From contig NW_026782782.1 in the NCBI RefSeq assembly GCF_031769215.1, forward strand, positions 124,001-188,000: DNA of 64,000 bases, given 5' to 3'. Every line of letters begins with the position of its first letter. The first letter of the stretch is position 1. The DNA comes from Ylistrum balloti (taxonomy: Eukaryota). Positions 256 through 34,300 of this stretch are shown one piece after another. The notes beneath the pieces are model-generated. The model had not been told where the DNA came from. It searched no databases and worked only from the letters and a program-made list of their open reading frames with translations. The position numbers and the translations under genes were made by a program.

Positions 256-3200
256 CGGGGATATCTATGATGGAGCAGCCACCGAAGTAGTCAGAGAACA
301 ACTGGGCATTGAGCGTGGCACTCATCAGGATCACCTTCAAGTCTTTACGTTTTGGCAGCATGTCCTTTAGGTACATCATCAAGAAGTCACTGTCATCACA
401 CAACATCATTTATCATTAAGATTTGAAATAAATCTGTGAGGGCCAAGGAATATTTCATTTTATAGATATGAAAAGTAATGAAATAATTCCCTCTTAAGTC
501 TGTGGTGATCAAGTACAAGTACAGACCAGAATTTAGAAATATTATAACTTTATTTTGAGTATCATAGTCATGAAATATTCTTCAATTTTATACAATTGAT
601 AACAAGCTTTTTTAAAGGAATATCAACTTGGACATATGAATAAATACAGAGAAAGTTACGATCACCCTACCCTGCATTATGTCTATTAATGTTTGAATCT
701 TTATGATCCTTCCCAAAATATCCATTGAACTCTTCAAGTTAGACAGCTGTCTGTATGTAATGGGAATATATAACCAATAAAAAAATAATTGAGGCATAAG
801 TAACAGTACTACTGAACACCTACCTCTCCCCTGACTGTTCATTGACTTTGTCTATAACATACAGTACTACTGAACACCTACCTCTCCCCTGACTGTTCAT
901 TGACTTTGTCTATAACATACAGTACTACTGAACACCTACCTCTCCTCTGTCTGTTCATTGACCTTGTCTATAACATACAGTACTACTGAACACCTACCTC
1001 TCCCCTGACCGTTCATTGACCTTGTCTATAACATACAGTACTACTGAACACCTACCTCTCCCCTGACCGTTCATTGACCTTGTCTATAACATACAGTACT
1101 ACTGAACACCTACCTCTCCCCTGACTGTTCATTGACTTTGTCTATAACATACAGTACTACTTAACACCTACCTCTCCTCTGACTGTTCATTGACCTTGTC
1201 TATAACATACAGTACTACTGAACACCTACCTCTCCTCTGTCTGTTCATTGATCTTGTCTATAACATACAGTACTACTGAACACCTACCTCTCCTCTGTCT
1301 GTTCATTGATCTTGTCTATAACATACAGTACTACTGAACACCTACCTCTCCCCTGACTGTTCATTGACCTTGTCTATAACATACAGTACTACTGAACACC
1401 TACCTCTCCCCTGACTGTTCATTGACCTTGTCTATAACATACAGTACTACTGAACACCTACCTCTCCTCTGATCGTTCATTGACTTTGTCTATAACATAC
1501 AATACTACTGAACACCTACCTCTCCTCTGTCTGTTCATTGACTTTGTCTATAACATACAGTACTACTGAACACCTACCTCTCCCCTGACCGTTCATTGAC
1601 TTTGTCTATAACATACAGTACTACTGAACACCTACCTCTCCCCTGACTGTTCATTGACCTTGTCTATAACATACAGTACTACTGAACACCTACCTCTCCC
1701 CTGACTGTTCATTGACCTTGTCTATAACATACAGTACTACTGAACACCTACATCTCCTCTGTCTGTTCATTGATCTTGTCTATAACATACAGTACTACTG
1801 AACACCTACCTCTCCTCTGTATGTTCATTGACCTTGTCTATAACATACAGTACTACTGAACACCTACATCTCCTCTGATCGTTCATTGATCTTGTCTATA
1901 ACATACAGTACTACTGAACACCTACCTCTCCCCTGACCGTTCATTGACCTTGTCTATAACATACAGTACTACTGAACACCTACCTCTCCTCAGATCGTTC
2001 ATTGATCTTGTCTATAACATACAGTACTACTGAACACCTACCTCTCCCCTGACCGTTCATTGACCTTGTCTATAACATACAGTACTACTGAACACCTACC
2101 TCTCCCCTGACCGTTCATTGATCTTGTCTATAACATACAGTACTACTGAACACCTACCTCTCCCCTGACTGTTCATTGACCTTGTCTATAACATACAGTA
2201 CTACTGAACACTTACATCTCCTCTGTCTGTTCATTGATCTTGTCTATAACATACAGTACTACTGAACACCTACCTCTCCTCTGTATGTTCATTGACCTTG
2301 TCTATAACATACAGTACTACTGAACACCTACCTCTCCTCAGATCGTTCATGGACCTCGTCTATAATGATATGTGTTATACCCTCGAGTGTAGAATCTCCC
2401 TCCAGCGTCCGCAACACAATCCCCGTAGTACAGAACAACAGCCGTGTCAGAGATGACTGTACACAATAATTGTTATGGAGGATTACAAGTGAGTGAACAT
2501 TTAATTAGGCCATTTTTAATATCTTGTGGTAATTTTAAGAAAAGGGATTAAGACTTACCCCCATGATCAAGAAGATAAGTTTTATAAATCCCTCAATTTT
2601 TCATAGCTGTATGATTTTACAAATGCAAAAAAAAGAGGGTTATCATACCATTGATTGAAAAATAATGGGAATGAGGTTTGACAAAAAATGCAGCACCTTA
2701 GACCAAATTGAAGAAGACAATGAAATTTTACACCTACCTGTACACTGACAATAAAAATCTCCTATAATTGTAAGCAAGTACAAGAGGCCCATGGGCCTTA
2801 ATGATCATCTGAGTTCTAACATCATCATAGTTGTGTTTGATATTTGTGACCCGATTTTAAGTACATGCAATTAAACAAAATTGCTGACAAATTGTATTTG
2901 AGCCCTGCGACTCAGAATCTAGAGGGTTCACTGGAGCATTTGTTATTCTACAGTATCTGAGCCTGGAGAAGATTTCTGAAATAAAATCAAATTTGTCCCT
3001 TTTTGTCTTGCCCTCCAGGCCTCAGGGTGAACAACAGGTAAGGTACAAAAATGGACGACGATAGATCAGAAAAGGTCACTGACCTAAAAATGACTTCTTT
3101 TTGAATGTCCCTCATTAACCTTACTAATTAAATGTCTCACATTAAACGTACAAGTAATCTCCATACAATATTCCTTTTTCATTAGCCCCTTTACTACATA

Positions 3201-6200
3201 CAATCTGTCAAAGTCAACTTCTTCATGGTATTTAATGTTAAATTTTTAATCTAACAGCTAGCTGTTCATAACAGTAAAATTTCACTTCACGCTGAACAGG
3301 ATGGCCTGAATAGGAGAAATACTAACTAGGGGTAAAAATACAGAAAATATATAACAAGCATCCTTAATGACAAACTGCTAAAGCAGTTAACTTCACTGCT
3401 CTTTTGGTCAGCAGATGATCAAAAGAGTAGTATTGTCAACATATCAAATGCTCTATTGTTATCATCCTGTACTTTCTACTTACCTGAACTTTCTCCAGTC
3501 TGATCTGGTAACCAACAGTCCGACCAAGTTTCTCTGCTCTTTCTTCAGCCACACGCTCAGCCACAGCCATGGCCGAGATACGGCGTGGTTGGGTACACAG
3601 GATTGAACACATTTTCAAGTCTTTAGACTCCAGATATGAATCTAAGATAAACTGCGGGACTTGTGTCGTCTTACCACACCTAAAGATAACAATAAGTGTT
3701 TTTATATATATATAAACCATATTTATAAACAATAATTCAATATTTGTTTTCTAATAAGATTGGTCCCATGTATGAGCAGTTAGATAATTTGAAGAAGCTG
3801 TCATAGGTTTCTAATCATTACCTTTTTTTACAGGTTAACACAATATCTGATATGAAAATCCAATAATAAACAAAACACATTAATTGTTATATCTAAGTAT
3901 ATCATTATGGTATGATTTATATCCCAAACTAGCTAAAATTTTACTAATATAGTGAGATACGACATGCTGGTTACAGTTTGCTCATTTAATCTATCATCTT
4001 CAAAAGTACTGTTATAAATATACCAGTCTTGAGATCAATGTGAATGATCTGACGATCATTTTTGAGTGGTCAATATCAGTCATACCACTGACCTCAAAGA
4101 CCTAGTGACTCAATATCATTGGTCAATATTTTACCCATTCATACCACCAACCAATAACACCTGGTAACTCTAGACCAGAGGTCAATATCTTACCTAGTCA
4201 TACCTCTAAACACCAACACCTTGTGACACTAGACGTGATGTCAACATTTTATCTAGTCATACCTCTAAACACCAACACCTTGTGACACTAGACGTGATGT
4301 CAACATTTTATCTAGTCATACCACTAAACACCAACACCTGGTAACTCTAGACCAGAGGTCAATATCTTACCTAGTCATACCTCTAAACACCAACACCTTG
4401 TGACACTAGACGTGATGTCAACATTTTATCTAGTCATACCACTTAACACCAACATCTTGTGACACTAGACGTGATGTCAATATCTTATCTAGTCATACCA
4501 CTAAACACCAACACCTTGTGACACTAGACGTGATGTCAACATTTTATCTAGTCATACCACTTAACACCAACATCTTGTGACACTAGACGTGATGTCAATA
4601 TCTTATCTAGTCATACCACTAAACACCAACACCTTGTGACACTAGACGTGATGTCAACATTTTATCTAGTCATACCACTTAGCACCAACATCTTGTGACA
4701 CTAGACGTGATGTCAATATCTTATCTAGTCATACCACTAAACACCAACATCTTGTGACACTAGACGTGATGTCAATATTTCATCTAGTCATACCACTAAA
4801 CACCAACATCTTGTGACACTAGACGTGATGTCAATATCTTATCTAGTCATACCACTAAACACCAACATCTTGTGACACTAGACGAGATGTCAATATCTTA
4901 TCTAGTCATACCACTAAACACCAACACCTTGTGACACTAGAGAAGGTAACATTTCATCTAGTCATACCGCTGACCACCAACATCTTGTGACACTAGACGT
5001 GATGTCAATATCTTATCTAGTCATACCACTAAACACCAACACCTTGTGACACTAGAGAAGGTAACATTTTATCTAGTCAAACCGCTGACCACCAACATCT
5101 TGTGACACTAGATCAGAGGTCAATATTTTACCTTATCATACCAAGGACAAACAACTGGTAATTCTAGATTTGAGGTCAGTATCTTACCCAGTCATACTAC
5201 TGACCAACAACATTTGTTAGCTCTAGATCATACCACTGACCACCAACACCTAGTGGCCCTAGATCAGAGGTCAATATCTGACCTAGTCATACCAATGTAC
5301 CACTGGAAAACAATCCCTGGTAACTCTAAATCAGTTTTCAATATAATACCCATTTCTCACTACTGACAAACAACACCTAATGACCCTAGATCAGACGTCA
5401 CTATCTTACACACTCATACCACTGACCACCAACACATGGTGACCCTAGATCAGACGTCACTATCTTACACACTCATACCACTGACCACCAACACATGGTG
5501 ACACTAGATCAGACGTCACTATCTTACACACTCATACCACTGACCACCAACACATGGTGACCAGAGATCAGACGTTAATATTTTACCAGGTCATACCACT
5601 GACCACCAACACATGGTGACCCGAGATCAGAGGTTAATATTTTACCAGGTCATACCACTGTCCACCAACACATGGCGACCCGAGATCAGAGGTTAATATT
5701 TTACCAGGTCATACCACTGACCACCAGCACCAAGTGACTCTAGATCAGACATCCAAATCTTACCCAGTCATACCACTGACAACCAACACCTGGTGGCTCT
5801 CTAGAGCAGCTAGAATTTCATCTTGCATGCTCCAAGCTGGTAGATTTTGTCTCTGGTTCATCATATTCTGCAGAGCTTTGGAATTCTAAAATAAGTGTAA
5901 ACATCATTTTCACTATTATCTCTTATAATACATGTGCATGAATTCAACATTTATAATGTACGAGTACCTATAAATCCAATGCAGAAATGCACATAATCAG
6001 AGTATCTTAACATCAAAATTTCACTTAGAAAAATACTCAATTTTTTTCTAATTCACTTTAGACTTATGTTTACTTTTTTATAGCTATTTTTTTATAGTAT
6101 ATGTATTGATATTGTCAGATTAATTGGCTCCTTTAACAGAAAGTAAAAACATATCTTTATTACAGTATCACTATTACATAAAATTATTTCATTATAAAAC

Positions 6201-9200
6201 AATTTACTTCAAACTGATTCAGATTGAAGTTTTTGACATTTTAAGTTACCGGATACAAATGATACACAATAGATTTGACATTCTCTCACCTTTTTCCTTT
6301 GGTATTCATCTTTCAACTTTCTGTTCTGTTTCAGTGTCTCACCCATGTTCATTTGTTTCATGATATTACTATCTTTTGTATTGAATCGCTTTTTTTCCAT
6401 CTTAATTTCTTCTTCGTCTAACTGGTTTTCACGTTCTGCCATTCTAATCATTGTAGCTGTCTCTGATTTATAGTCTTCCTCCGAGGATGTCTGTCTTTTG
6501 AAAGGAAACATAACTGCAGATTGTTCCTCCTCCAGTTTTTGTTTCCGTCGCCAGGACTGGTTACACTCAGGCTGACTGTACTCTAGTGGCGGTTTATTAT
6601 ACAAATGTACAACAGTTGTTTCATCGTCCAGAACACTGACTAAAGAAAACACAGCAGGTGCATGCATTTCCGCACAGTCGATAGCTTCTTTTCGCAGGCG
6701 CTCTGTGATAAGCAGACACACATGAGGAGGAAAATTTGGCAGAGTGGAGGAAAATCCAACAATAGGTGCCTCTACAGGGTACAGATTATCTTCAGGAAAT
6801 CTAAATTCTAATTCAAAATCTGGCTTATTTTTCATAAGCTCTTCGTTTGGTATAAAAATCTTTTGAACAACTTTTGGAATTTCATGAGAATAATGACATT
6901 TCTTTCCAAATCGACAAAATCCTTTCAAATAGAATCTACAAACTTCAACATTTTTATCTTTTTTCTCCTGAACTGTCTCTTCCTCCTCTGGTTTTGGAGA
7001 TTTTATCAAGTCTTTAAGAGAAGGAAGATCTAGACATAGTGACCAGACTTTATTGGGAATCTTTTCAGTAAAATTGTCTTCATATATTGATTTCAAGGCC
7101 ATTATTTCTTCATTTCTTTGTTCTTCGATATCTTCCCATGTCAGACCAAGTTCTGCTAGGATTTTTTTGGGGTCCTTTTTATCCTCATCTAAGAAATTCT
7201 CATCAGAACTATTGTCATTTCCATTGTCATCAACTTCTGTCTCTAAGTTTATGTTGATGTCAAAACATTTACAGAATAAGTATTCAAATGCTGTTCCTAT
7301 GTCACCATCATGTAACTGTAGAGCTTCGACGCATCGTTTCTTCTCATACCCATATCTGTAATCAAACACAATGTACTCAAAGCATACCCATCAATTAGGC
7401 CGTATAATCATTCATCTTCAAAGTACCATTACTACCGTAAACATCCTGCAATAAGCCCAGGGGCTCCCACACTTGTCATCTTATTGAAATTCGGAGGACT
7501 TGCAAAAACAGGATGAAATTGGATTAGTTTATGATTCTATATAACTGCAATATACATAGGTGGACTTATTACATATTACCAGGCATAAATAAAGTAAGGT
7601 ATAAAATGATAATGCAAATGACACTCAACTGAATAATAATTTTAACCATGAAGTGAAAATTTTTAAAACTGCATCATACACCTGGTATGTGTCATGTGTC
7701 CTTTTAGGACTTACCAGTGATGTTAGTGGCCTAAACACATAAATCCAGACCCAGGTAGATTAAAATCGAAACCTATCTAAAGGAGTACAGATGATGGTGT
7801 GCACTTATTCAGCTGTTAAATGAATCTGGTTTATTTTTTATATTGGCATCTCCCTATAAAATTTACAAAGCATGATTATAGCTATCCAATAACAGTAAAA
7901 CAGTAGTAATCACTATCAAATCATATTGTTTGTATACAGTCCATTATTAAGTATACCTGCAGCTCTGGTAGCTTTTTATGATACCTTCCTGAGATATTTG
8001 TCTATCATATCTGAGCATATTTAAAGTAGTGTAAAAAGTTTGAGTATGAAATTGGTCTTTATAAATGAAACTTACAGATATTTGTGATGATGAGACCCTG
8101 AGTTAACAACTACGACAACACAGTTTTATCTATACACCAAAAATAACTACATCATGCAAGTGCATAATTATTGTTATCAGTGCTTTCATATTGATTAAAC
8201 TTTGGGAAGATACTAATTGAACACTGAGTTTGCTCATATTTATAAACAGCTATAACTCCAAAAATCATGAGTAGGCATCAAAGTTTTTCAAACACTTATG
8301 CAGTGATTATTGTAAGATATTCTCATGCAAGTCCAGACTTGAGTGGTCGGGTCTATGTGGCGCAGTGATAATGCACTCAACTTTCATCTATCCGTCCGGG
8401 GTTTCATTCCCAGAACGGATGTGAAAAGGTATGAAGTCACCTGCCTGACCATCTGGGTTTACCGTAGATACTCTGGTTTCCACCCACAGTAAGACCCCTG
8501 TTCATTTCCATCAAGGCCAACAAGAGTAATTTAATACAAGTTAATAGTTAGTTTCGCAATTGCTGTAAAATAAATAAAGTCCATCCTGTCTTTGAAGAGT
8601 ACCATTACTAAGAGATATAGTAGGTTTTGAAAACTTATGCCAGTCCCATAAGAAAAGCAAGATTTAAATACTTTAGTCCCAAAAATCATTCTCAAGATAA
8701 ATCCTATCTACCTGTGAAGTCAGAAGTTGATTTGAAAATCTTGTATTTATGGACAAACATTTATAAACAGGAAATTGCTTTTCATATCAGGTTTACCTCA
8801 TCAGTTTGTTAATGGCGATGTGACTAATGCATTCAGCATCCATTTTACTGCCCTTCTTTTTGCCGTAGTAGACCTGGACATCTTCTATCTGTAAAGGATC
8901 TTTGGTCATCCAGTATTGGTCCTCAGTTCTCATATCTAACTCATCATACTCCTCCTCACTGTAAGGTAATTAGGCTTAACATTGGCTAAACTGCATTTAT
9001 CAAGTAACATCATATGTAAATCCTGATATTTCATAACCAGTTGACAAAAAATAGTTTTATAAAATTAGATACATTTCATGCAAAATATGTTCACCTTACC
9101 AAAATTACATAATTGCATATTGTATATGTGTAAAATATTCATTCATGGGAAAAATAAATTTAATGATGATACCTAAAAAACAGATATATGTGTTGTCACC

Positions 9201-16300: not shown

Positions 16301-19300
16301 GAATTAGGGGATAGAGGTGCTTATGACAATCCATATAGTATTACACATTTGAAGCATGATTAATATCTGTATGTGTATGCATTGTAAGATTGTAATTTGA
16401 ATACAGTGTATGGATTGGCACTGACATAATTTGGAGAGAAACATGACATTTACACCATATCATGACAGTGAAAAGAGTTATGGGTATTGTCATCCCATTC
16501 ATACTACTTGGAGGTCTTTTTTCTGAGGGGATGGTATTGTTTTTCTGTTATGGCTATTATTGGTGCATGGGTTTATCACCAAATATTCAATTTGCATGGA
16601 TACAATACTACAGCGTAAGATGCTGATAGAAATCCTGACCCTAAAGCTGATGATTTAGGCTGTAGGTGCCTACTACCATTATTATATTATTGATCTATTG
16701 GTAACATGGTTATGTGTTGATACCTTTGTCATGGGGTTATTCTTTTTCAGAATGTTTTTACGTGAGGGAGAAAATTAGATATCAAGTATCTTTATAAAGT
16801 CAGAAAACAGGACAATACCATTATTGTATTTTATACAGCATTTTCAGATTTTTCAGCCAAATAGTTGTAATAAACAGGATGTGAATCCAATCGGTTCTTT
16901 GTGATATCCATTGATATCCAGGATGACTGGTACCAGCTACAACTTCATATAAGTTATCAACTCACAGAGACAGATGATAAGATGATGATATGAGGAGATA
17001 ATGTAATCCTGCTTAAATACTAGCAAGCAATATACTGCTTGGCTAGAGAGAACTTCTCTTTAGCTTGATCGGGTAAGCGTCAGATTAGTAATCCAGGTAT
17101 CCCAGGTTCCCATCTCCTCGTGAAAAAGGAGGTGAGGTTGGATGAGGGGGTATTTCTTGCCTCAACTGAATTCAATTGTAACAGAAAAAAATTTCAAACT
17201 TGGAACGTTTATTGATGTTTTCTACAGTGAACTGTTGACCATGAAATGTTATACAGAACTGAAAATTATTGCTTTTCCATCATGTCATTATGTGTTAAAT
17301 TTGGCTGTAATCATTAGTGTAACCATTCGGATGAAATCAAAAAGCATTAAAGGTGTAACATGTATTCCAGTGAATCAGGATTTGATTTGATATATCCCAG
17401 TCAGTTTACCATTTGTCATTGTTTTGGCCAGTTTACACTTTTCTATCATAGTATGCAAGCTTATAACATTTAATGTATGAGGTTTTTGGGTCACAAACAT
17501 GTTTTCGTTTTGTTTCCAAAAATGAAATCAAACAAAATCCACCAGGAATATTACTAGCTATAGGAATATGTTCCATGTTCATCCGTGTCGCCTCGGTGAT
17601 AAAAACAGAATAAGAATGATTCTAACTTATTTCTTCATTTTTTATGTTGCTTCAGTTTTTATCACCTTTGAAATTAGATGCAGCAGCAAGTGTTCCAAAT
17701 GACCTATGTTATTGAAATAAATATTCAATACAATACTGTTTGATAAAGTTGAAGTGCTATGTTTGAAGTGAGTATTTAGGAAATCACATGGGCAGTGCTA
17801 TATTAATATATAGACTAGGTACCAGGATATATTATCTAAAATATCAGATCTAGTTTGAAATCCTGAAACAATCTTTGTGACTAATACAACACATGAAATG
17901 ACACGTGATAATAGAACAACAATATTATAAGAATAATCATCATATCAAATTTATTACAACAAAAGTGCCTGCATTACATATAAGCTCATCTGAAATGAAA
18001 ACATAATGACTATTAAAGAAGAGCACTACAAATTTTGTGAATTCCCACCAAGGATTCGCTTCATCAGTCAAGGATTTTTTCAATATTTAGCATTTTACAA
18101 CAGTTTACTATAAGTTTTACAATAGTGAATGCAAAATCACAGAAGTTTTACAGGAAATACTTGGCTGAAAATGCAATAGATGTAGAATTACTAACATGTA
18201 CATTATAACATCTGCTAGATATATGCATACCAAAAAAGCTGTTATGAAACAGATTTGTACAATAAACAATAACAAAATCATTTTTTACACAACAAAAAAA
18301 ATCATGAGCATGTGTACTATTACAAATATATCAAAACACAAGAATGTATTATTACAAAACATTGCAAAACACAAGAATGTTTTATTACAAAACATTGCAA
18401 AACATAAGACATTTATTATTACCAAACATAGCAATACATAAGAATGTGTTATTGCAATACATAAGCACTGTATTATTGCAAATTATTACATAACATAGGC
18501 AAAACATAAGACATTTATTATTACAAAATATAACAAAGAATAAATAAATACTACTACAAAAGGTGACAGAGTAAGACATTTACTCATTACAAAAAAAGGC
18601 AGAGCATAATATATTTATTATTACATAATAAAACAAAGCATAAGACATATTTTAGTACAAAATAAAGCAAAACATGATATTTACTGTAAAAAAATATTTT
18701 CTAAAAATGAGATATGTATGGCTGTGAAAGAGCACTAAATTTTAAACAAAAAATTGAGAATCAGAATATTAAACACCCCTCCAGAGAACACTGTAGTTGG
18801 TTGTAGACATCCTTGCTAGTTCATCCGTTTCCACACTCATTCCTGCTGTGACTGGCATCTCCAAGTCCATCTCTCCTCCCAGGGATGAGAGGATAAGGGC
18901 AGATAACTCCTGGACCTGGTATTGCTTGGTAGATCTGTACTGGTCAAACATCTTGCGAACACCCTGGATGATGGACTTACGGGTCAGTAGGTGGAGGACT
19001 AGGCTGTGGGCATCGTCTATTGTAGATAGAAAGACCTGGCGGTCAAGGCGGATCAATTGGTCATCTGGAATGAAAAAAAAATTTATTGTACACTATTTAT
19101 GTCCAGAGGATCAAAACTGTCATATATAATTATATTTATCCATTCTCCTGATACACAGTAGCCATTGGGATTTGAACTGAAGAAAATGTGTATCTATGCA
19201 TGAAATGAGTTTTTCAGGGTATGGCAAAATGATTATTTTAACAATAAGCTATTTATTCTTTTTGATTTATGACTTGAAAAAAAAACTAGTGAAAAATTTA

Positions 19301-22300
19301 TATTTTAAATGATTATAGTTACCTAAGAAGTGAACCTGCTTGGCAGCTCTATCATGGGCAATTAGAAGACTGTGGAGTTTCTTGGCATAGCAAACAATGT
19401 CAGGTGTTGGCAACTCAGCCATGGTGCAGAGTAGAGGTCAACTGGTGGTAAAGTAGATGTTGAGAAGTTGGTAGTGATGATGCTAAGGCAATATTGATTT
19501 CAACTTAGAAAAAAAATGATTATATAGACTCTGCTTACTTGTGATTGGTTGCTTCAATTGGTTACTTGATTGGTTGCTTAGAATGGACTCCACCTACACT
19601 TGAATGCAAAAACAAGCTTTTCATGATGTCTTAAAGGAATGTATGTGTTAGAAGTGTTCACTTCTGATAAGATCAAAGGTCTCTTGTCCAGGCATGGCTT
19701 GGTGTTACGGTACAGGTAATGAGGTCAGAGGTGGTAATGTAGGTCAGATCAAAGGTCTCTTGTCCAGGTATGGCTTGGTGTTACTGTACAGGTAATTAGA
19801 TTAGAGGTAGTAATGCAGGTAAGATCAAAGGTCTCTTGTCCATGGATGGCTTGGTGTTACTGTTCAGGTATGAACGTCAGAGGTGATATTGGAGTGAGGA
19901 TCAAAGGTGTCTTGTCCAGGTATGGCTTGGTGTTACTGTACAGATAAGTAGATTAAACATGGTATTATTGGTAAGATCAAAGGTGTCTTGTCCATGTATG
20001 GCTTGGTGTTACTGTACCGGTACTTAGATTAGAGGTGGTAATGGAGGTAAGGTCAAAGGTCTCTTGTCCGGGTATGGCTTGGTGTTACTGTACAGGTAAT
20101 TAGATTAGAGGTGGTAATGGAGGTAAGGTCAAAGGTCTCTTGTCCAGGTATGGCTTGGTGTTACTGTACAGGTAATTAGATTAGAGGTGGTAATGTAGGT
20201 AAGATCAAAAGTCTCTTGTCCAGGTATGGCTTGGTGTTACTATACAATGTGTACAAGATGGTTGTATTCAAGAATTGAGAACAACCAACAAAATTCTGGT
20301 AAATGTCGCGGTATAAAAACATTGTAGATTATTCCAACTTGAAATTGTATCTCACCTAATCTTTAACATATAAATATGAATTTATCATAACTAAGTATAG
20401 GTTATCATACTGTGTATTAAAGTATAGAAACAGTCAGATATAAAGGCATTAGACAGTCTCAACGACAATGTCCCCTATGCAATAAGTGATGATATCAAGA
20501 TGAAACTCATTTCATTTTGTCATACCCAGTCTACTAAGACCTCCAAACAAAATATATCAAACCCTGGTATTTCTGTCTTCCATCTGAATTCAAATTTACT
20601 TAATTATTCTCATGCATAGATGAGAAACCTTAAATAAGTATTTATTACAAGCTACGTCTAAATGAAAATATGTCTTAAATATCAACTGTGTAAATGTTTC
20701 ACTGACCATTATATGTTTTCTTTTGCATGTTGATAAATGTTATGTTCTCCACCATCTTATGATCATTGAATGAAATATTTACCTATATGCATATTGTATC
20801 TTATATGCTATTTGAAGTTGAAAAGTAAAGAAATAGGAAAAGTAAATGTAATTCCAATAGAGATAGTAATGGCAAAAAGATTTTAGGTGTCTTGTCCAAG
20901 TATGGATCGGTGTTACTGTTCAGGTAATTAGATGAGAGGTGGTAATGGAGGTAAGATCAAAGGTCTCTTGTCCAGGTAGGGCTTGGTGTTACTGTACAGG
21001 TACTTAGATTAGAGGTGGTAATGGAGTAAAGATCAAAGGTCTCTTGTACAGGTATGGCTTGGTGTTACTGTACAGGTAAGTAGATGAGAGGTGGTAATAG
21101 AGGTAAGATCAAAGGTGTCTTGTCCAGGTATGGCTTGGTGTTACTGTACAGGGAATTAGGTGAGAGGTGGTAATGGAGGTAAAATCTAAAGAATCCTGTT
21201 CAGGTATGGATTACTTTAACCAATTTATGATGACAAGAATACCGGTATGTCCATTTCTTTATGCAAAGTATTTTGACCAATTTTGTGGAGTAACATTTTG
21301 TTAAAACATCACTAGTGTAAAGAATTATATTGTAAGAGACATTTACACCTTTATTACTATGGCAGTTTCTATTCCAAACTATGTGTTTGGTTTAGATCAC
21401 TTCCCCTACCCTCATAACCATAGTGATATAGAATTTGTTTGCTTGGTCACTCTGTAGGTTGGCAATTATGGTGTAGGTTTTACTATTCTCATTCTCTACA
21501 CTAAAAGGACTTATTGAATGCAATGAGATTTTAGAAACATGAACAAGAGTTGGTCATCGGTTATATACCATCTTTAGTATATTGAGATTACAGGTCTAGT
21601 TTGTGATGGTGGAAATTGCATATGAATATAAGATCTGGTTTCAGATAAATCATTATACATGCTTCCAACACATCTTAACACAATTCTGAAGGCGTAACAG
21701 TTTAATGGCTGATATTTTAAGCAGTTGCTTTAACTTTTGGAATAACCTCTGATAGGACTACTAGTTTAAATGACAGTACTTACAAAAGATTTTTTTTTGT
21801 GTTGACATGTCCACAGAATCTGCTGATCCTTTACAGTTTTACTGTTGAAATCCTTGATTCTCGAATTTTTTAAAATTTTGTTTCAAAATTTAAGGTTCTG
21901 TATCTTTCCCAGGGGTGACAGTTACAGGAAATTGCTATTGACAACTTCTCTTTCAATTTCCTTGTTAAATTTTGACTGTTGATTGTTTGACAGGTTTTGC
22001 TCCATTAACAGGTATATGATACTGTTTACTTGTTATCTAAAGGCTACCAGGGGCAGATCCAGGATTTCGACTTAAAGAGGGCAAACTAAAACATCTCTCT
22101 GTACCCCATATCTTAACTACCCCTTTATTAGCTCACCTGGCCCAAAGTGCCAAGTGAGCTTATGCCAAAGCGCAATGTCTGTCGTCTGTCCGTCCTGTGT
22201 ATGTCAAGTTTTCATTTAAACAACTTCTGAAATACGGAAAGGTGTAGTTATCATATTTGGATGGAAGATTCCTTTGATGAAGCCCAACAAAGTTTAAAAA

Positions 22301-25300
22301 AAGAAATGACGTTGACCCATCTTCAAATGTGTTAAACCTTTAAATGACATTTTCTGATTATCCAGAACATCTAGGATAGTGGTATTATTCTGAAATGGGT
22401 CCTCCATATGGAGTAATTTATTATATTGCTTTAAGCATCTACTGTAGAACATATGCAAAGATATAGTATTGTTGGTCATAAAGATCCAGACGAGCGATAC
22501 AGGCCCTCGGGGCCTCTTGTTTATAGTTTCTGATTCTAATTCTATTTTTTTCTTTGATTTTGTTTGTTTATGCAAAAAAAGTGAAGTTCCATGTATGGTG
22601 AAGACAGACAGATGTTTGTCCTTTGTCTAAGACCAGGCATATAGCCAATGAGGTTGCAGGGTCAATGGAAAAGCCCTAGTGAAGGTTTAGGGAAATGATA
22701 TCCTTAAAAGTTTGAAAGACATCAGGATGGTGTGGTGACTATTTTGATAATGAAAATGTTACATAAGAAGCAGGGTACTTCAGTAAAGGTATGTATGCTC
22801 CTAGCCCTGTTGACTGCCTATGATATCCTTCAAAACATCTCTAAATGCTCTTTTTCTTGAGAAGAGCTTTAGAGATCATTCTTATTATATATAGATTGTC
22901 CCATGTGAAAATGCAATTTTTGGACTATGACATCAATAAGATAAAATCACTTGGATTTTGACAGAAAAGGCTTTATGCCTTTATTTCTTGAAAGAAATGT
23001 AGGAATCCTTTCCAAAAACATGCATGCTTCTGTTTTCCTTGGTTCCAATGGTGTTTAGTTTACTTTTGGGTACAAAGGAGAAAATGGTCTATAAAAACAT
23101 ATGTATGTCTTGTATTTAGACAAATAATCAGATTTCATAGGCCAGATTTTAGTGATGCTTTCTTATCCATGTGTAGTTTTGAGATATTTCATCTAGTGCA
23201 TGATATGGCAATGTACAAAGAATAAAATTATCATCATAAATAAATAAATGAAATATATAAACAACAACAATTATCCAATGATTGTTTAGACATTTATTAC
23301 ACATTTGTAGCACTATCACAAACTATTAAAGGTGCATCTGTGATCTGAAAAACCTCAGGACATTCATTAAGTGATTTTATATCAGTTTATTCAATATTAG
23401 AAGTTCTACAGTTCTACAAAAAATGTACAGTAACAGTTACACAATACAGAAATATTTCGACAATAAGAAAAATTACTTAACATACATGATATTTCTGGGG
23501 TTACTTTTATATAAAAGCATCAAAGATTTTAAACAGAAAGACACCCTTACATCACTAGCATTCAATGTAATCAATAGAGCACTGCCTAGACAATTAAACT
23601 GTACATTATTATGAAGTAACAATTTGATATATACGATGATATAAAACTTTTGAGTAATACCACAGTAATTTCAGTTTGCAAGCAGTTCTAAGTAGATAAA
23701 TGTTCAACATCACACACCCCTCCAGAGAACACTGTAGTTGGTTGTAGACATCCTTGCTAGTTCATCTGTTTCCTCACTCATTCCTGCTGTGACTGGCATC
23801 TCCAAGTCCATCTCTCCTCCTAGGGATGAGAGGATAAGGGTAGATAACTCCTGGACCTGGTATTGCTTGGTAGATCGGTACTGGTCAAACATCTTGCGAA
23901 CACCCTGGATGATGGACTTACGGGTCAGTAGGTGGAGGACTAGGCTGTGAGCATCATCCAGTGTAGATAGAAAGACCTGGCGGTCAAGGCGGATCAACTG
24001 GTCATCTGGAATTGAAATTTTTTATTGTACACCATATATGTTCAGAGGATCTCATCACAGTAGCCATTGGGATTTAGAACTAAAATCATGAACAATAAAA
24101 TGTGTATCTATGCATGAAATCAGTTTTACAGGGCATGGCACAGAAACAATAAGCAATATATTATTATTTGTGACTTGAAAAATAATATTGGAAAATTTAT
24201 TTTTTAAATGATTATAGTTACCTAAGAAGTGAACCTGCTTTGCAGCTTTATCATGGGCAATGAGAAGACTGTGGAGTTTCTTGGCATAGCAAACAATATC
24301 AAAAGTTGGCATCTCATCCATGGTGCAGAGTAGAGGTCAACTGGTGGTAAAGTAGAGGTTGAGAAGTTGGTAGTGGAGATGCTGAGTCAGAATTGATTTC
24401 AACTTTGAAAAAAAAATGATTATATAGACTCTGCTTATTTCTGATTGGTTGCTTCAGTCAATTTCTTGATTGGTCACAAAGGATGAATTCAAAATTGATA
24501 GCAAGCTTTTCATGACGTTTTAAAGGAATGTACAGTTATGTGTGAGTAGATAGTCACTCAGGATAAGATCAAAGGTCTCTTGTCCAGGTATGGCTTGGTG
24601 TTACTGTACAGGTAAGTAGATGAGGAAGTGTACTGTAGGTAAGATCAAAGGTCTCTAGTCCAGGTATGGCTTGGTGTTACGTACGGGTAATTAGATTAGA
24701 GGTGGTAATATAGGTAAGATCAAAGGTGTCTTGTCCAGGTATGGCTTGGTGTTACTGTACGGGTAATTAGATGAGGAAGTGTACTGTAGGTAAGATCAAA
24801 GGTCTCTTGTCCAGGTATGGCTAGGTGTTACTGTACAGGTACTTAGCTTAGAGGTAGTAATGCAGGTAAGATCAAAGGTCTCTTGTCCAAGGATGGCTTG
24901 GTGTTACTGTACAGGTATGAAGGTCAGAGGTTATATTGGAGTTAGGATCAAAGGTTTCATGTCCAGGTATGGCTTGGTGTTACTGTACAGGTAATTAGAT
25001 TAAACATGGTATTCTTGGTAAGATCAAAGGTGTCTTGTCCAGGTATAGCTTGGTGCTACTGTACATGTAATTAGGAGGGGAGTGTACTGTAGGTAAGATC
25101 AAAGGTTTCATGTCCAGACATGGCTTGGTTTTACTGTCTAGGTGATTAGAAAGAGGTGGTAAAGTTGGTAAGATCAACAGTGTCTCGTCCAGGTATGGCT
25201 TGGTGTTCCTGTACCGGTAATTAGATTAGAATTAGGTTGGGACTTGGTTGTGCATTGTAAATTTTGAACTTCATTTTCAAGATGGCCTGTTTGATTCTGA

Positions 25301-28300
25301 ATTTCATTCAATATATAAATTTTTGGCCAAACAGCATGTTTACACATACAAGGTACAATATATGTGTGAAATACAAGATTCTTAGCAAAGGAAGTGAAAA
25401 ATTAAGTAAGAAATTAATCCTTAACTTATTTGACTCAACAATAAATTTATCTAGTTGACATAATTCTTTTGTATTTTCAAATATAGAGTTGATTGACCTC
25501 ACCAAAAATCACCAAATCCTAAACCAAATAATAGATTGTTTACATATTGCATCCATTTAAAACTGGTTCCTGTTCTCTTTTTCAGTGGAAAATGATATCC
25601 ACTATTCAAAATACAGTTTTCAAAATCAACTTATTTTGACCAAGTTTCCAAGAATTAAATTTACAGTGTACATAACATGTACTTTTCTTTTTCTTTATGT
25701 AGTCTCTTACAGAAATTTAAATATCTATCTTTTGCATCCAGGACCTCCATGATTCACATGCATAACACAATATGCTGCTCTCATATGTATCATATATATG
25801 TAACATTGTTAGTTCATCAAGCCTGAGCAAAGCCAGACAAAGTTTGTGAAAAGAAATGACCATGACCTTTATTCAAGGTCACAGGGGTCAAATTTGTTAA
25901 AAACGTGAAACAACTTCTCATGAACGAATAGGCTTAGAGACATGATATTTGCCTAAGCCCTGAGGTGAGCCCTACAGGTCCATTAGGCCTCTTGTTTAAC
26001 CTTAGGTTTGCATATTTTGAAAGTAAAGCGAACATTGCTTCTGGATACTGTTGAATGCATTGTTATACTTTATAAACCCTGATATATGTCGATTGATCAC
26101 CACTGATTTGCCATATTTCATCCATATTTTCCCATCCTTGGGAAATTTTGTCTTATCAATATCTACTATGAATTTCCATTGTTCATCATAGCTAGCCAAA
26201 TAATCTAACAACTCTTTTTAACCTTCCACTGTTTCCGAGAATAACACTAGGTCATCTGCATATAGCATTAAGATTAGATACAACTTTAAATGAAAAGTGC
26301 TTAAAAAACATCTACATACATTTAAAAAAGTATCAAGAGATAAAATTAACAACTGTCATCAACATCAACATGGATAAAATCTGAAAAAAGCACCATTAAA
26401 TCTTAGAGAAGATGATATGTTTTTATATACTGTCTTTATAATTCACAAAATTTGCATCTAATATCTAATTTAGACAATTTATACCATAAATAAATTAACC
26501 CGATCAAATGCATTTCTAAAATCAACAAAAAAGGAATAAAGTCATATATTTCACATAATGACATTGAAATAATTGAATAGCATCTAGAATGCTATGTATT
26601 GCCAGGAGGAAAACCAAAATGGGATCACTGATAATATCACCTGACTCTGATATATATATCAATATTGTGATCAATATAGATGTAAACAATTTACCCAGAC
26701 AACTACGTAAATACCTTGGACATTATTGGGTTCAGTTTTATTTTTTTTTGTTATTACTGCAACAGACCATTTTGAAGGAAAACAGTCAGAGTCTAAAATT
26801 CAATTAAATGATATACATAATGTTGGTAGTAATATAGCCTTGCCAACTCTAAGATAGTCATTCAGTATCAGAGATAGGGATAGAGTCATCAATCTTGGTA
26901 CATGTAGTGTTAACTTTTCTATTTAACTCATCTTATACCTTGATCAGTACTCATGTGTAGGTGGTCGGGTGGTGCAGTGGTAATGCACTCCTTTCACCTA
27001 GTCGACCGAGGTTCAATTCCCGGAGCGGGTTTCCCGGGGGTACTCTGGTTTCCTCCCACAATAAGACCCTTGCGAGCATTACATCCTGCCCAACAAGAGT
27101 GATTAGAATAAGTTGGCATAACTTGTTTCGCAATTGTTGTAAAATAAATAAAGTTTATATATACTCATATTTAACTTAATGAAAAAGTTTCTTAGCTTGG
27201 AGCAATTCATTTGTGAATTTAGAAACATGCTCATAGTTATCTTTACTATACTGGTTGACATTGTCAGGTAATACTTCTGACTCATTAAAGGTATCATGAT
27301 TAGTGGAGAGAGTACCAGTATCCAAAAAATCTTCATTACATCATCATGCCAGTGATATTTTGTCTGCACAGTATGTGAACAATTGGACACTGTCGTGTAT
27401 AGTACAATTTTTCACTTAATAACATATACTCAACAAAAAAAGAAAAGTTAACATGTTTCCTTGGCGAATACCTGTAAATGAGTGAAAACAAAATGGCGTT
27501 TGTGCAATATTAGAAAATGGTAATGTTTTACATTACAAAATCCAAGGGGGTTTCCAAAATCATTCAAGCGTGAAAGTCTGCGACTAACTTGTATCTTTGC
27601 TTGAATTTCATAAACATTCAAACTGACAACTGTTCCTTAGATCCTTAGGACATAGAAATCACTGAATCTTGCTATCTATCAACTTTATTATTTTGCCCCA
27701 GCTGTCACAAGTACAGAGAGAAAGGGCTGTAGGCATGATCCAGACTGGGGAGTCTTGCCGTCGAGTTGCAAGACATTTTGGTTGCAGTGTTAAGACAGTT
27801 TGCCAGTTGGTAAGTCGTTTAAACCAAACTGGGTCAACATCTGTTCGTCCCCGAAGTGGCTGACCAAGTAAAACGACCGCCAGGGATGACAGTCGTATAC
27901 GATTGATACACTTGCGCAATCGATTCGTAACCGCAGTAGAGACTACAAGGACATTGTTTGGGCATCGTGTGTCTCCCTAAACAGTCCACAACAGGTTGAG
28001 GGCCTACCAAGCACGGCGTCCCTACACTGGACCCAATTTGTTGCGACGTCACCGTAATAATCGGCGTAACTGGACCCATGTTCACCGTTGTTGGGCCTTA
28101 CGACAATGGAACAAGATTCTGTTTTCAGATGAGTCCAGGTTTTTTCTGCAACACAGTGATAGAAGGTTCATAGTGTGGAGGCGACGATGGGAGCGTTTTG
28201 CGAACTGCTGCGTCGCAGAACGGGACCGCTTTGGTGGCAGAAGTGTAATGGGGTAGTATTTGTGGGGGGACTCATACCAGGCTTGTTTTGTTAAATGGCA

Positions 28301-31300
28301 ATTTGACCGGCATTCGATATCAGGACGAAATTTTAAGAACAGTGGTTCTACCATTCTTAAGATGCCATGGCGTTGGCGCCATTTTTCAACAGGATAACGC
28401 ACCAGCGCACACCAGTCGCGTCAGCAGAACATTCTTGCAGCAGAATAACGTAGATTGGCCATCTAAATCACCTGATCTGTCACCGATTGAGCATATCTGG
28501 AATGTTCTTGGGCGACACGTGAGAGAACATCAAAATCAGCAGGCAAACTTGCAGGAGCTGGCCCAAGCTTTGATTGCTGAATGGAACAACATATCTCCTC
28601 GAATTATCCGCTGCAGTTCTGTTTACTTCGCAAACGGTGGCCATTCCTGTTGCTAATGGTGTTACCTTTGAAATTGACCCCAACGTCCAGCCGAATAAAA
28701 TCAACTGAACAAAGTTTTATAATGAATCATGACTGCAGTTTTATCAGAATTGATCAGTTACTTTATTCGTACATGATTGGTAAGCGTTTATGAAGGGGTT
28801 AATTAATTAATCACAGAATAAAGTAGTGTTACCTTTCTTTTTTTGTTTAGTATATATTGCTGGTACAACTATTGAAATCACACATTAACATAGTATCATT
28901 TTTACTGGTATGTTGTCTTACACTTTCTTCTAATTAATACTTCAATTTGTAGCAGAACAAAAGTTTCACGGATAACTTCAGTAACAGAAATGAGGTTCAA
29001 GTCTATCTACTCCTTGAGAATGAATGTTGTGTCTATGTGGAAATACGAAGTATAACCTTTTACTTCCATTTCATAATTATTTGTAATCCAAATATTTGTT
29101 TTTGAGTAAATTTGAGAAAAATATTACATTTCTGTTATTTTTGCAATACACCACTAATGTTCCATAAAGTACAATCAATATATGTGAAACACTCTCATTC
29201 TTAACTGTCATAGTGATTGTTGGATTGATGAATTTAAGGAATTGTTTCTGCATCCTTTGTCTCCTAACGTGGCCGTTAGCAGGTATGGTACTGGACCTGT
29301 GTATAATGTTCAATATGTAATTTATCTATGGTCAAACACACATTTTCTTTTCTTCCCTGGCCTTCTGACACACTGGCCAGTTTTCTATGTGTCTCTTGAA
29401 TTTACCTTCAGAGATTGGTAAGATATGTAAGTTTTACTAGAATTAGCCTTTATACATTCCTTCTGTCAATATTGACTGAATTCTACAACAGTGGATGTGG
29501 TCTTACCCTCTTTCTTCTCCCCCGTCCAATGTACTAGGTCAATTACAATATCTCTCCTTAGGATAATTATAGTTATTTGCAGTGAATCCATGACAGTCTC
29601 AGTCGTCTCTGATATCTTATCGACCTCTTGGCTGTTTATATGATAAATGCATAATGCAGAAATGAAAACACTGAGAAAACAAACAGAAAATATGAAATGA
29701 CATGTATATTTATATTTCAAAATTTAATATACCACTAAGACAATGAAAAACTACACTAGTAACACAACATTATATTACAAGGTACGAGAATTTAGACACA
29801 AAAACATACAATGACAATGTATAACAACAAGATATGATAACAATATAACATTATGACACAGTGGCAAACATTAACAATGACAACAAATCAGCACAACATG
29901 GTAACACAAACATTACAAATTTACACATCATAAAAACAAAAATAAAAGGATAATATACCAACAAAGCACTAGGACACAGAAACACAGGTGTACATTAATG
30001 TCAACAACAAGCACTAAGTTAACCATGAAATTCATATTAGGTATCCTACAGATATAAACAAAGCACTTAACTATACTATAATATTTCATTTACCTAAACA
30101 GTAAACTTACAACAAAGTTTTGGCATCACACACCCCTCCAGAGAACACTGTAGTTAGTTGTAGACATCCTGGCTAGTTCATCTGTTTCCACATTCCGTCC
30201 TGCTGTGACTGGAATCTCCAAGTCCATCTCTCCTCCCAGGGATGAGAGGATAAGGGCAGATAACTCTTGAACTTGGTGTTGCTTGGTGGATCGGTACTGG
30301 TCAAACATCTTGCGCACACCCTGGATGATGGACTTGCGGGTCAGTAGGTGGAGGACAAGACTGTGGGCATCGTCCAGTGTAGATAAAAAGAGTTGGCGGT
30401 CAAGGCGGAGCATCTGGTCATCTGGAATAAAGAGGGAGTTTATATGAAAATTTTCATTGACATGATATTCTATAAAAATACTTGTAAGTTGTATTCTTAA
30501 TAAAAGCCATTCAGAAAAATATTAGATTATATATTACTTATTTTATGTTTTTTTATCATCATGTGTTTTTCATGTGATTATTTTATTCCAAATTGTTTCT
30601 TGTGTACATTCATTTTTTTATATACAAAAATCATTTACTTTTATCACAATGTCATGATATACAGTGTAAATGTATACAGGGAGAATAACATTTTGCCAGA
30701 TTTTGTACATGAACATGGAATCTGTTGTCAGTAAATACACATTACCTTCATAATTTTTTATTGAGTCCTTGAAACAATTTCATTCAATCCTCATATATTT
30801 CATGTATCTGCATGTCTCTGAAGGAAAAAAATCATTTATTGGCTTTTGACTTTAAAAAAGAATGTATCTGCAAAATAATATTAAACATATTAAAAATCTA
30901 ATTTGATTGTTATGTTTGATCCTATTAATAGAAGAAATAGACAAAATAATTGATATTTAAAGTTTAAACCTGATAACATTTATACTTATGATAATTACCT
31001 AAGAAGCTGACTTGCTTGGCAGCCTTGTCATGGGCTAGCAGAAGGCTTTGGAGTTTCTGTGCATAGCAGACAAGGTCAGAAGTGGTCATCTCAGCCATGG
31101 TTCAGTGTAGAGATAAACTGTTGATCAAGCAGTGCCAAGAGATGCTCAGGCAATAGTGGTTTCAATTGGTAAAAAAAATATATTATATAGACTCTGCTTG
31201 CTTCTGATTGGTTAATTCAGTTTATGAGTTTGATTGGTTGTTTGAAATGGACTCCACCTACATTTAGATCAAAAAGTTATAATCATTTTTAATTACACTT

Positions 31301-34300
31301 CAAAGAAAAGTACAGTTAACTGTGAGAATAATGTTCACTCCTGATTAGGTCAAAGGACTCTTAACCAGGTATGGCTTGGTGTTACTGTACAGGTAATTAG
31401 ATGAGAGGTGGTAATGGAGGTAAGGTCAAAGGACTCTTAACCGGGTATGGCTTGGTGTTACTGTACAGGTAGTTAGATGAGAAGTGGTTATGAAGGTAAG
31501 ATCAATGGTCTTTTGTCCAGGTATGGCTTGGTGTTACTGTGCAGGTAATTAGATGAGAGGTGGTAATGAAGGTAAGATCAATGGTCTTTAGTCCAAGTAT
31601 GGCTTGGTGTTACTGTACTGGTAATTAGATGAGAGGTGGTAATGAAGGTAAGATCAATGGTCTTTAGTCCAGGTATGGCTTGGTGTTACTGTACAGGTAT
31701 TTAGATGAGAGGTGGTAATGGAGGTACGGTCAAAGGTCTCTTGTCCAGGTATGGCTTGGTGTTACTGTACAGGTAAGTAGATGAGAGGTGGTTATGAAGT
31801 ACTGTACAGTAGAATACGTACTGAAGGTAGCTTTGACAAGGAATGGCTTGGCGTTACTGTTAATGCACCTTCTGATTTCACAACAAGAAATCTTTAATGA
31901 TATTCACTGGACAATAAATAGTAAGGATTTTTTTAACATATAAAGGAAAGTCAATATACATGTAATCAGAGAAATTATCAGACTATTTCATAATATGAGT
32001 TCTTTTACTCAAGAAAATGGAAACTTCCAGTTATCTTGTCTGATTTACAAGGTATTAAGTTATTTTCTAGAAATACAGTAAAATGGATATAAGTTTATGT
32101 ACCTCCTTCAGCACCAGCACCCACATTGTTCCCTGCATAATGATGGTCCTGTTTAACTTGCTGGAACTACCATACTAGTAAGCTTTGACTCTATGATATC
32201 TTGTTTGCTGAGCTTATTGTCATGTGAGTAAACATATCAGAGATATATCCCCTGATATCTAGGTGTTGTTGTGTTTTGGCTGGGTACATGGTAAATCCAT
32301 TTTGGAATTAGGGCTAGTTTTCATGCAACTGTAGTTTATAATATTTTTGATCGAAATGGGGGACTGATCATGATTGTATAGCACAATTACCCTATTGCTC
32401 TTAAAATTCATTGTATTGTTTTGTAGTATCTGTTTACTGATATTCAGCTAGTAAACAGATTGTAGGGGAGGAGGCTGTATCCGGACTGTCCCTTTATGGT
32501 ATGGACCTCATCTGTTAATCAAACTAATTCTATAACAACTTCATTCTGAGAAAATCCTATTGAAAGGGAACCTAACAATTTACCCTTATGAAAAATCTAG
32601 CCTGTATATTGGGGGACCATTCCCACTTTAATCTACAGTCTTGTAAATTCACAGTAGATTGACCTGTGTGTTCACTGAAACTTTGAAACAGGATATTTAT
32701 AAAATTCACCTCAAATTAATATATTGTTATTTAGTGGGATGGCGACTTTTGGCTTGACTTTGAAAGAGCAATACATCACACCTCTCTGTCCCACCTAAGA
32801 TTCTAATAACTTAAAAAAACAGCCAACTACAATACATATATCGACAGTGTAGGATATTGATACTTTTGTGTTAAAAAGTTTTGATACTTTTAACATCCAG
32901 GAACTGAAATATTTTTTCCTGTGAAGTTATTAAAAGTTTTGGTATAGAAACTTTTCAATTTAACTTTCTACATGATTACACCAGATAACAAGAGAGGCCT
33001 ATATAAATCTTCTCCATAAATCTTCTCCATGGTGGTGATCAAGTCAAAAACTTGCACACCCCTTCTCACAACATTCAACTATACACCATACTATCATTAC
33101 GCAACCACACAAATACACAGTCTTAAGTACTAGCAACTATCAATATAATTCATAAATAAATTCAACTTTTCTGAAAGTATAAATAATATGAAATTAAAAA
33201 ATTAATTTAATCTATTAGGAAAGAGTTTGATTTGCATATGAAATTTATCATATTCCAAAATATAAGATGGTGTTGTTTGTGAAATATGATATTATTGACA
33301 CCCCCATTTTGTTGAATATAAAGTTTAGGATGTAGTGGTATAGTTTAAGTCTTGTATAGGTGGTGATTCTTTTCTTTCCAAACTAAGTCATTACAGACTA
33401 TATCTATGTGGCTGGGTATCCAGACAAAGCATACAATATATATCCACTATTCATAAGTTCGGTATCAAGCTTTTTCGTACTTAATACAGTTGAATTTTGG
33501 ATTTTATACACTGGTGAGGTGAAAGCCGAAAAGGAAGACAATTAAACTACAAAAATTCAGCAGTTTCTCCATTGTTTTAACCTGGTTTGTCCTTTACATC
33601 TGTTTGGTCACCTACCTAGGTACCTTTGCATTACAGCTTTGGGTGACCTATACATCATTCAACTATCATTTTTGTCTTGAAATTTTAAAACCGAGGTTGA
33701 ATACCATTTCTGTATAAGTGTTAGGTGGCATGAAATGGCAGTACACAAAGCTTTAACATTGTTATGTGCTCTAGATACAATACAACACTGTCATCTGCAA
33801 ATTGAGTAGTATTAGTCTGTTGTGGTTAAAGTTGGTGACACCACACTCCTCAGTCAGGGTGGGTAGAGGAGGAGGAGTGGTTCCTTTTCAACAATATAAA
33901 TATTTGAAAAATACTTCCTGTTGAATCTGCCTAATATCTATTTCTTAAAATTATTTTTATGTATGAATTCATATTTCCATGAACAGTAATACCTCTTAGT
34001 TTATACACAAATCCCTCCTTTCATAACAAGTTGAAGGCTTTTTTTCAAAGTCTGTAAAAACAACCATTAAACTCTCTTTCTTTGATATGGCATTTTTAAT
34101 CTCACTCTTTAATTTCATCAGCTGATCTATCATACTGCATGCCTTTTAATACCATAATTTTCCCAAGTATATGTCATTATTTACTGTTGAACAATATTTC
34201 TGACAGTATGTTCAATTGGCATGGGATATTATTCTTTTACACACCGTTTTTTTTTTTTTAAACTGGTATTCAACTTCAAATTCTTTGTTTGTATATGATG

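Follow-up and report, generated by a model that had tools for sequence, protein, structure and literature searches.

Synthetic reporters of Wnt signaling such as TOPflash, Super8xTOPflash and similar constructs place 3-16 high-affinity high-mobility-group (HMG) sites before a basal promoter. The HMG consensus of TCF/Pangolin is SCTTTGWWSWW (PMC4154663), and one published synthetic TCF reporter was built with the site CCTTTGATCTT (PMC8421206, PMC4154663). Invertebrate TCFs also bind, via their C-clamp, a Helper site, GCCGCCR, which several targets in flies and worms are reported to require (PMC8421206, PMC4154663). In the human IDO1 promoter, a variable number tandem repeat (VNTR) contains a LEF-1 site in its repeat unit, with binding confirmed by chromatin immunoprecipitation and the site tested by mutagenesis (PMC3181322). 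Here we analyze a window of 64 kb from the scallop Ylistrum balloti (contig NW_026782782.1, positions 124,001-188,000), which contains three paralogous two-exon genes on the minus strand, each encoding 131 amino acid residues and each with an array of 76-bp repeats ~245 bp upstream of its ATG. An earlier reading of the window, hereafter the original prediction, described the arrays of two of these genes as natural and TOPflash-like; no paper mentioning these loci was found in a literature search.

Array borders, unit length and copy number in the window were obtained with Tandem Repeats Finder, which showed four head-to-tail segments of 76-bp units with 80-90% matches, a unit size within the 10-100 bp of minisatellites. 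The proximal part of array 1 (19668-20246, minus strand) contains 7.6 units upstream of gene copy 1, four of them with CCTTTGATCT in the gene orientation, and its distal part (20859-21209; 20885-21209 according to Tandem Repeats Finder; minus strand) contains ~4.3 units, of which three retain the intact motif. The two parts are separated by ~610 bp of single-copy sequence (20247-20858, with no strand assigned) whose depth, measured as the summed contig depth from a low-coverage Y. balloti DNA run, is 7-12, the same as that of the flanks, and the distal unit adjoining it is degenerate. Array 1 is a single array of ~12 units interrupted by this insertion. The single hint of a polymorphic unit number is an extra unit of ~75 bp at 21087-21152 in one low-depth contig of the DNA run, although short-read contigs are unreliable in repeats. 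Array 2 (24564-25231, minus strand) precedes gene copy 2 and is 8.8 units long; seven of these contain CCTTTGATCT, and the array has a higher-order period of 152 bp. Array 3 (31350-31870, minus strand), upstream of gene copy 3, contains 5.9 units (31350-31799) and one degenerate unit. The window also contains many minisatellites other than these arrays.

The window contains 14 exact copies of the motif AGATCAAAGG, which all lie on the plus strand and inside the 76-bp arrays, while 0.14 are expected in shuffled sequence. Seven start at 19670, 19746, 19822, 19974, 20954, 21030 and 21106 in array 1, and seven span 24566-25096 in array 2, at exactly the positions listed in the original prediction, whose usual extended form, GGTAAGATCAAAGG, was found in 10 of the 14. 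Array 3, which has no exact motif, had been overlooked. Matches to the 11-bp HMG consensus number 16 in the window, 13 of them in arrays 1 and 2. We share the caveat, raised together with the prediction, that a repeat multiplies whatever its unit contains, so the motif count within a single genome is not independent evidence; the weight rests on the comparative evidence rather than on the count in Y. balloti.

For this comparison, the loci around the orthologues of Pecten maximus, Mizuhopecten yessoensis and Argopecten irradians (such as LOC117322063/4 in Pecten and LOC110445764 in Mizuhopecten; scallop loci L001-L004, ~84 kb in total) were fetched and analyzed with those of Y. balloti, giving 12 gene copies and 102 units. 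A homologous array was found directly upstream of all 12 gene copies, in a constant orientation relative to the gene, with 6-12 units each and its end 245-304 bp before the ATG. The unit length is 76 bp in Ylistrum, 71 bp in Pecten and Argopecten and 62 bp in Mizuhopecten, and in every species compared the gene module is tandemly duplicated together with its array. The 12 reading frames are intact and their ratio of nonsynonymous to synonymous divergence (dN/dS) ranges between 0.11 and 0.22, with dS between genera (over 131 codons) of 0.40-0.79. Blastn alignments between species are confined to array, promoter and exons. In region-by-region global alignments scored against shuffled controls, identity between species was 0.70-0.84 for the array (z of 15-34) and 0.75-0.87 for the exons; in all pairs with Ylistrum, z stayed below 2.2, the level of shuffled sequence, for the intron, for the 300 bp preceding the array, for the stretch from array to CCAAT boxes and for the 3' flank. 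Furthermore, the species consensus units of the four genera are identical at 45-49 of 49 positions (92-100%) over their core. Given these dS values and introns and flanks at the shuffled level, neutral sequence is saturated, and a neutral minisatellite could not have stayed this similar; by this comparison, the array is under purifying selection, and the arrays are very probably functional cis-elements.

Per-position conservation, measured in the 102 aligned units as consensus changes between species and agreement within species, divides the unit into four parts. Block A, TACCTGTACAG(T/C)AACACCAAGCCATACCTGG, has 1 of 31 consensus columns differing between species and a within-species agreement of 0.96, and it continues over the unit junction as TCTAAT to give ~38 bp, TCTAAT/TACCTGTACAG(T/C)AACACCAAGCCATACCTGG (slash at the junction). 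It is followed by a linker, ACAAGAGA, with 3 of 8 columns differing and an agreement of 0.90, by block B, CC-TTTGATCT, with 0 of 10 columns differing and an agreement of 0.96, and by a variable spacer which bears the length differences, where most columns differ and agreement is 0.80. Block B plus its 3' T is CCTTTGATCTT, which agrees with the TCF/Pangolin consensus at 11 of 11 positions and bears out the identification of the motif as an optimal TCF/LEF HMG site; among the factors considered, a TCF-type HMG site is the reading that fits block B best. The full 11-mer is intact in 62 of the 102 units, and most of the remaining units keep CTTTGAT. CpG is absent from the consensus units of Ylistrum, Pecten and Mizuhopecten and occurs once in that of Argopecten, in an ACCGCC located ~10 bp downstream of the TCF site; CCGCC is found in none of the other three species. 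On the strand opposite to the small genes, which is the sense strand of a tubulin-tyrosine-ligase (TTL) family gene, each unit shows three sequences resembling 5' splice sites, CAG/GTATGG, CAG/GTAATT and GAG/GTAAGA (slash at the splice point), a total of ~80 decoy donors in one TTL intron (19668-25231, plus strand).

A profile search of 1.8 billion proteins gave 39 family representatives, and all those looked up belong to bivalves; the distant members include further Pecten and Mizuhopecten paralogues and genes of Saccostrea oysters and Dreissena. In seven distant loci (from Pecten, Mizuhopecten, Saccostrea and other bivalves), the 500 bp upstream of the ATG were scanned, with the background rate taken from the same loci. 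The 71-76-bp array was present in none of the seven, and strict CTTTGAT/ATCAAAG cores were observed nine times against 1.08 expected (Poisson 2e-6). All nine lie between -311 and -169, with 1-4 per core-bearing promoter. In two Pecten paralogues the site reads CCTTTGATC and lies at -174 and -171. Four cores are packed into 100 bp in a Mizuhopecten paralogue, where a 16-bp tandem duplication has doubled the site, and in a Saccostrea gene two reversed cores precede two CCAAT boxes. The sole intronless copy (L009) has no core within 500 bp upstream and is probably a retrocopy that left its promoter behind. What these paralogue promoters have in common is the bare ATCAAAG core: their 3' flanks are unrelated (AAGTGA, AAGGAT, AAGGGC and AAGAAA), and they share neither a second nuclear-receptor half-site nor block A. 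Judging from this distribution, the family promoters seem to have had a TCF-type site ancestrally, which scallops then amplified within a minisatellite.

Two of the distant paralogues have unrelated arrays of 39-41-bp units located 1.5-3 kb upstream (L006 4268-4530 and L012 1-948). These units contain (A/T)(T/C)ACCTGG, a short motif which also ends block A (ATACCTGG), and a single AATTACCTGTACAGG lies at -420 in L012. ZEB/Snail-type factors bind CAGGTA/CACCTG boxes, and homeodomain proteins bind TAATTA; the recurrence of (A/T)(T/C)ACCTGG may be a lead toward the factor of block A.

The anatomy of the array, its constraint and the identity of the motif are thereby established, and on these we infer which protein binds, as well as the direction and the signal-dependence of its effect. 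The 76-bp arrays would be a conserved cis-regulatory repeat, a natural multimerised enhancer for a bivalve-specific family of genes of ~131 amino acid residues, with blocks A and B as two elements constrained independently of each other in every unit. By the most likely mechanism, the 6-12 phased copies would recruit TCF together with a partner on block A, and TCF with beta-catenin would activate, or TCF with Groucho would repress, the adjoining CCAAT/TATA promoter. The ancestral family promoter probably had 1-4 scattered TCF sites, one of which would have been amplified as part of a minisatellite in the scallop lineage. A multimerised conserved enhancer with TCF on block B and a partner on block A is our best explanation of the whole, held with about even confidence; that TCF is the protein on block B we judge to be a balanced question in itself, and a response of the arrays to Wnt is conceivable, if somewhat doubtful. 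The strongest form of the proposal is that the scallop minisatellite is a natural TOPflash, a high-density array of Helper-independent perfect TCF sites, each paired with a co-factor site, born by tandem amplification from a 1-4-site promoter and making the gene family a direct, high-gain read-out of Wnt/beta-catenin. We advance this form tentatively and lean against it.

Several observations weigh against a TCF-driven array or against a simple likeness to TOPflash. In array 3, the TCF motif is intact in none of six units (three show ATTGATCT and three TTTGACC), while the block A core, CACCAAGCCATAC, is intact in six of six; gene copy 3 is still constrained (dN/dS of 0.11-0.16), and therefore the motif is dispensable for at least one gene copy. 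The full 11-mer is intact only in 32 of 38 units of Pecten, 5 of 12 of Mizuhopecten, 12 of 25 of Argopecten and 13 of 27 of Ylistrum. The comparison that the original prediction had named as a refuting test, of the motif with the rest of the unit, came out in favor of the motif: over the 102 units, conservation is clearly higher in block B than in linker and spacer. It is no higher, however, than in the ~38-bp block A, so TCF cannot account for the whole unit. The TCF sites are 62-76 bp apart rather than adjacent as in TOPflash, and the Helper site GCCGCCR was found in none of the 102 units of the four species, on either strand. In addition, unit number is fairly stable, at 6-12 across paralogues and species, and gives no obvious sign of a tuning by copy number, and dS was estimated from 131 codons only. 

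Among the alternatives, the one that survives best retains the array as a functional enhancer but has block B read by another factor, either HNF4/RXR/COUP on a direct repeat 1 (DR1)-like element, AG(A/G)TCAAAGGTC(T/A), or a SOX-type HMG protein; we consider it unlikely. In Argopecten, 15 of 25 units show TGACCTTTGATC, a single mismatch away from a DR1, and some Ylistrum units read AGGTCAAAGGTCT. However, a DR1 needs GGTC(A/T) at columns 38-42, and column 38 differs between species, while at column 39 the G of that GGTC half-site is retained in a fraction of only 0.50 of the Pecten and 0.67 of the Ylistrum units. The pattern TGACCTTTGA[CT]C is found in those 15 Argopecten units and in no unit of the other three species, and the paralogue promoters share ATCAAAG and not GGTCA, with no second half-site conserved. 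The overlapping nuclear-receptor element of the original prediction consequently fits less well than the TCF site, a near-perfect DR1 being confined to Argopecten. As for SOX proteins, the generic HMG core WWCAAWG is common to them, but GAT after CTTT is the preference of TCF, whereas that of SOX is CTTTGTT/CATTGT.

Rather improbable, in our opinion, is that the array was selected for another role, as a boundary or insulator shielding the nested gene from host transcription, in nucleosome phasing, or as the source of an upstream antisense RNA rich in U1 sites that resemble 5' splice sites. On the opposite strand, CAG/GTATGG and CAG/GTAATT are present in all four species, a conservation which follows from their location in block A, and GAG/GTAAGA in three. 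Furthermore, two units span 142-152 bp, near the length of one nucleosome, with higher-order periods of 152 and 143 bp, and many family members are antisense-nested in introns of large genes. Against an RNA, no Rfam match was found over 18000-32500 except a chance mir-2582 (E of 0.15) outside the arrays, and the fold is not conserved: two-unit z values are +0.6 and +0.9 in Ylistrum, and an antisense hairpin in Pecten (z of -4.4) depends on a Pecten-specific G. Nucleosome phasing is not conserved either, since unit length is 62, 71 or 76 bp according to genus. The main clusters of Pecten and Argopecten keep the array although no host gene surrounds them, and the recurrence of the short TCF core in the array-less paralogue promoters fits a factor-binding site.

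A neutral or transposon-derived minisatellite travelling with the duplicated module, its motif present by chance, is very improbable and by the sequence comparison largely refuted: the abundance of other minisatellites in the window, the duplication of module with array in every species, the automatic multiplication of a unit motif and the loss of the motif in array 3 are all compatible with it, but such an array should have diverged like the saturated intron and flanks instead of keeping 92-100% identity over 49 bp in four genera, and the motif recurs in paralogue promoters without any array.

Two other origins were rejected. A genome-wide or transposon satellite does not fit the summed depth, which is ~60 in the arrays and ~9 in the flanks; this is ~6-7x the single-copy flanks, as befits ~27 local units, and a presumed transposon 2 kb away, at 22.1-22.7 kb, reaches ~6000 (~600x). 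That repeat (22100-22700, between modules 1 and 2) is of very high copy number, with depths of ~1100-6300 against ~9 in its flanks, and is presumably a transposable element. A splice-junction ('mirage') origin was discarded because a search of the window outside the masked arrays gave no further copy of the unit, only 10-15-bp matches with E above 0.1, and because the array is also kept where the module has different neighbors. In the scallop loci and the window, every array adjoins a gene copy.

The genes beside the arrays are LOC132562792 (copy 1; 18769-19422, minus strand; exon 1 at 19422-19323, an intron of 258 bp and exon 2 at 19064-18769), LOC132562794 (copy 2; 23710-24321, minus strand; exon 1 at 24321-24222, an intron of 216 bp and exon 2 at 24005-23710) and LOC132562791 (copy 3; 30126-31098, minus strand; exon 1 at 31098-30999, an intron of 577 bp and exon 2 at 30421-30126). 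All three are antisense within one intron of the TTL gene. They share an upstream order of array, ~110 bp, two or three CCAAT boxes, the TATA box GTCTATATAA, a leader of ~95 bp and ACCATGG, with GTCTATATAA ~91-105 bp ahead of ACCATGG and the arrays located ~140-160 bp and farther upstream of the TATA box. The core promoter of copy 1 (19520-19573, minus strand) has GTCTATATAA at 19520-19529 (plus-strand coordinates) and three CCAAT boxes (ATTGG on the plus strand at 19544, 19557 and 19569); that of copy 2 (24420-24473, minus strand) has its TATA box at 24420-24429 and CCAAT boxes at 24444 and 24469, and that of copy 3 (31183-31237, minus strand) has them at 31183-31192 and at 31207 and 31233, respectively. 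The minimal CCAAT/TATA promoter that had been predicted behind the arrays is thus present and conserved.

The protein of 131 residues showed no Pfam match and no sequence match in PDB, and all its language-model look-alikes scored <0.8. A first AlphaFold model had a predicted local distance difference test (pLDDT) score of 63, which rose to 84 with an alignment of 24 family members, in a confident model with a long helical hairpin and a C-terminal helix. Foldseek returned only non-significant ESCRT-III/PspA-like hairpins (best E of 0.08), and the Atlas only generic hairpins. According to these models, the family encodes a helical-hairpin protein of ~131 residues.

Family members are often antisense-nested in introns of large unrelated genes, and no sense nesting was seen (window 18769-31098; L005-L009, L012 and L013). 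The hosts are TTL in Ylistrum, AAA/NVL-like and TUDOR/DEAD helicase genes in Saccostrea, TMEM232 and IFT122/WDR19-like genes in Pecten, Sec7 in another bivalve and CUB/LDLa in Mizuhopecten, a distribution similar to that of a gene that is mobile or often relocated. The main clusters of Pecten and of Argopecten lie outside any host gene and retain the array. In the NCBI isoforms X1-X3 of Pecten LOC117322063 (L001 10001-17150), exon 1 comes from one tandem copy and exon 2 from the following one, which indicates that read-through transcripts splice over a whole module including its array. Also in P. maximus, the last 10 codons of the gene and its stop (TNYSILWRGV and stop codon) form a 36-bp tandem repeat of 2.1-4.1 copies, a 'stop-codon minisatellite' (L001 11003-11148, 17117-17191 and 21595-21669). 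A second minisatellite, TG/CA-rich and with TTGTATATTGTAACATTGTA-like units of ~29-34 bp, closely follows the gene in Ylistrum, Pecten and Argopecten (window 18313-18691; L002 11105-11889; L004 7986-8788 and 11128-11863), so that the duplicated module has repeats on both sides, this one downstream and the array upstream.

If the arrays bind TCF, they would be a natural equivalent of the Wnt reporter in widest use, from an animal group in which Wnt cis-regulation is almost unstudied. A natural TOPflash, if true, would run counter to the published statement that natural Wnt enhancers have no such clusters and would imply that selection holds both the sequence of a minisatellite and its unit number; set against Archbold et al., a conserved natural array of repeated TCF sites would be a notable variant. 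The arrays could serve to test whether multimerised HMG sites work with invertebrate TCF without a Helper, and what block A contributes. They represent a rare minisatellite in which unit sequence, orientation, position and approximate copy number are constrained past neutral saturation, and this constraint makes them a clean system in which to follow the building of homotypic enhancers by tandem duplication. The native array could also be used as a reporter in bivalve embryology, with the unnamed gene family as a candidate Wnt target.

Compared with known systems, the scallop arrays resemble TOPflash in holding many same-orientation copies of a high-affinity site upstream of a minimal TATA promoter. 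They differ from it in being natural and evolutionarily conserved, with one site per 62-76 bp where those of TOPflash are closely packed, and in having a second conserved block of ~38 bp with each site and CCAAT boxes between array and TATA box. Natural Wnt modules, such as those of Drosophila nkd and Notum and of vertebrate Axin2 and Sp5, likewise have clustered, conserved TCF HMG sites near the promoter with partner motifs alongside; unlike the invertebrate modules, which depend on HMG-Helper pairs, the scallop units do without GCCGCCR. The IDO1 VNTR is, as these arrays are, a natural promoter tandem repeat with a LEF-1/TCF site in its unit, although it is a human polymorphism, while the scallop arrays, characterized so far in silico, have 6-12 units kept across four genera. 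Finally, the SV40 72-bp repeats and the ~75-bp direct repeats in the U3 region of gammaretroviral long terminal repeats (LTRs), the latter followed by CCAAT and TATA boxes, are multi-site repeats of ~70-76 bp with a layout as in scallops. In contrast to these viral repeats, the scallop array shows no sign of an LTR or virus, has many more units, appears to drive a spliced cellular gene and is inherited with that gene across species.

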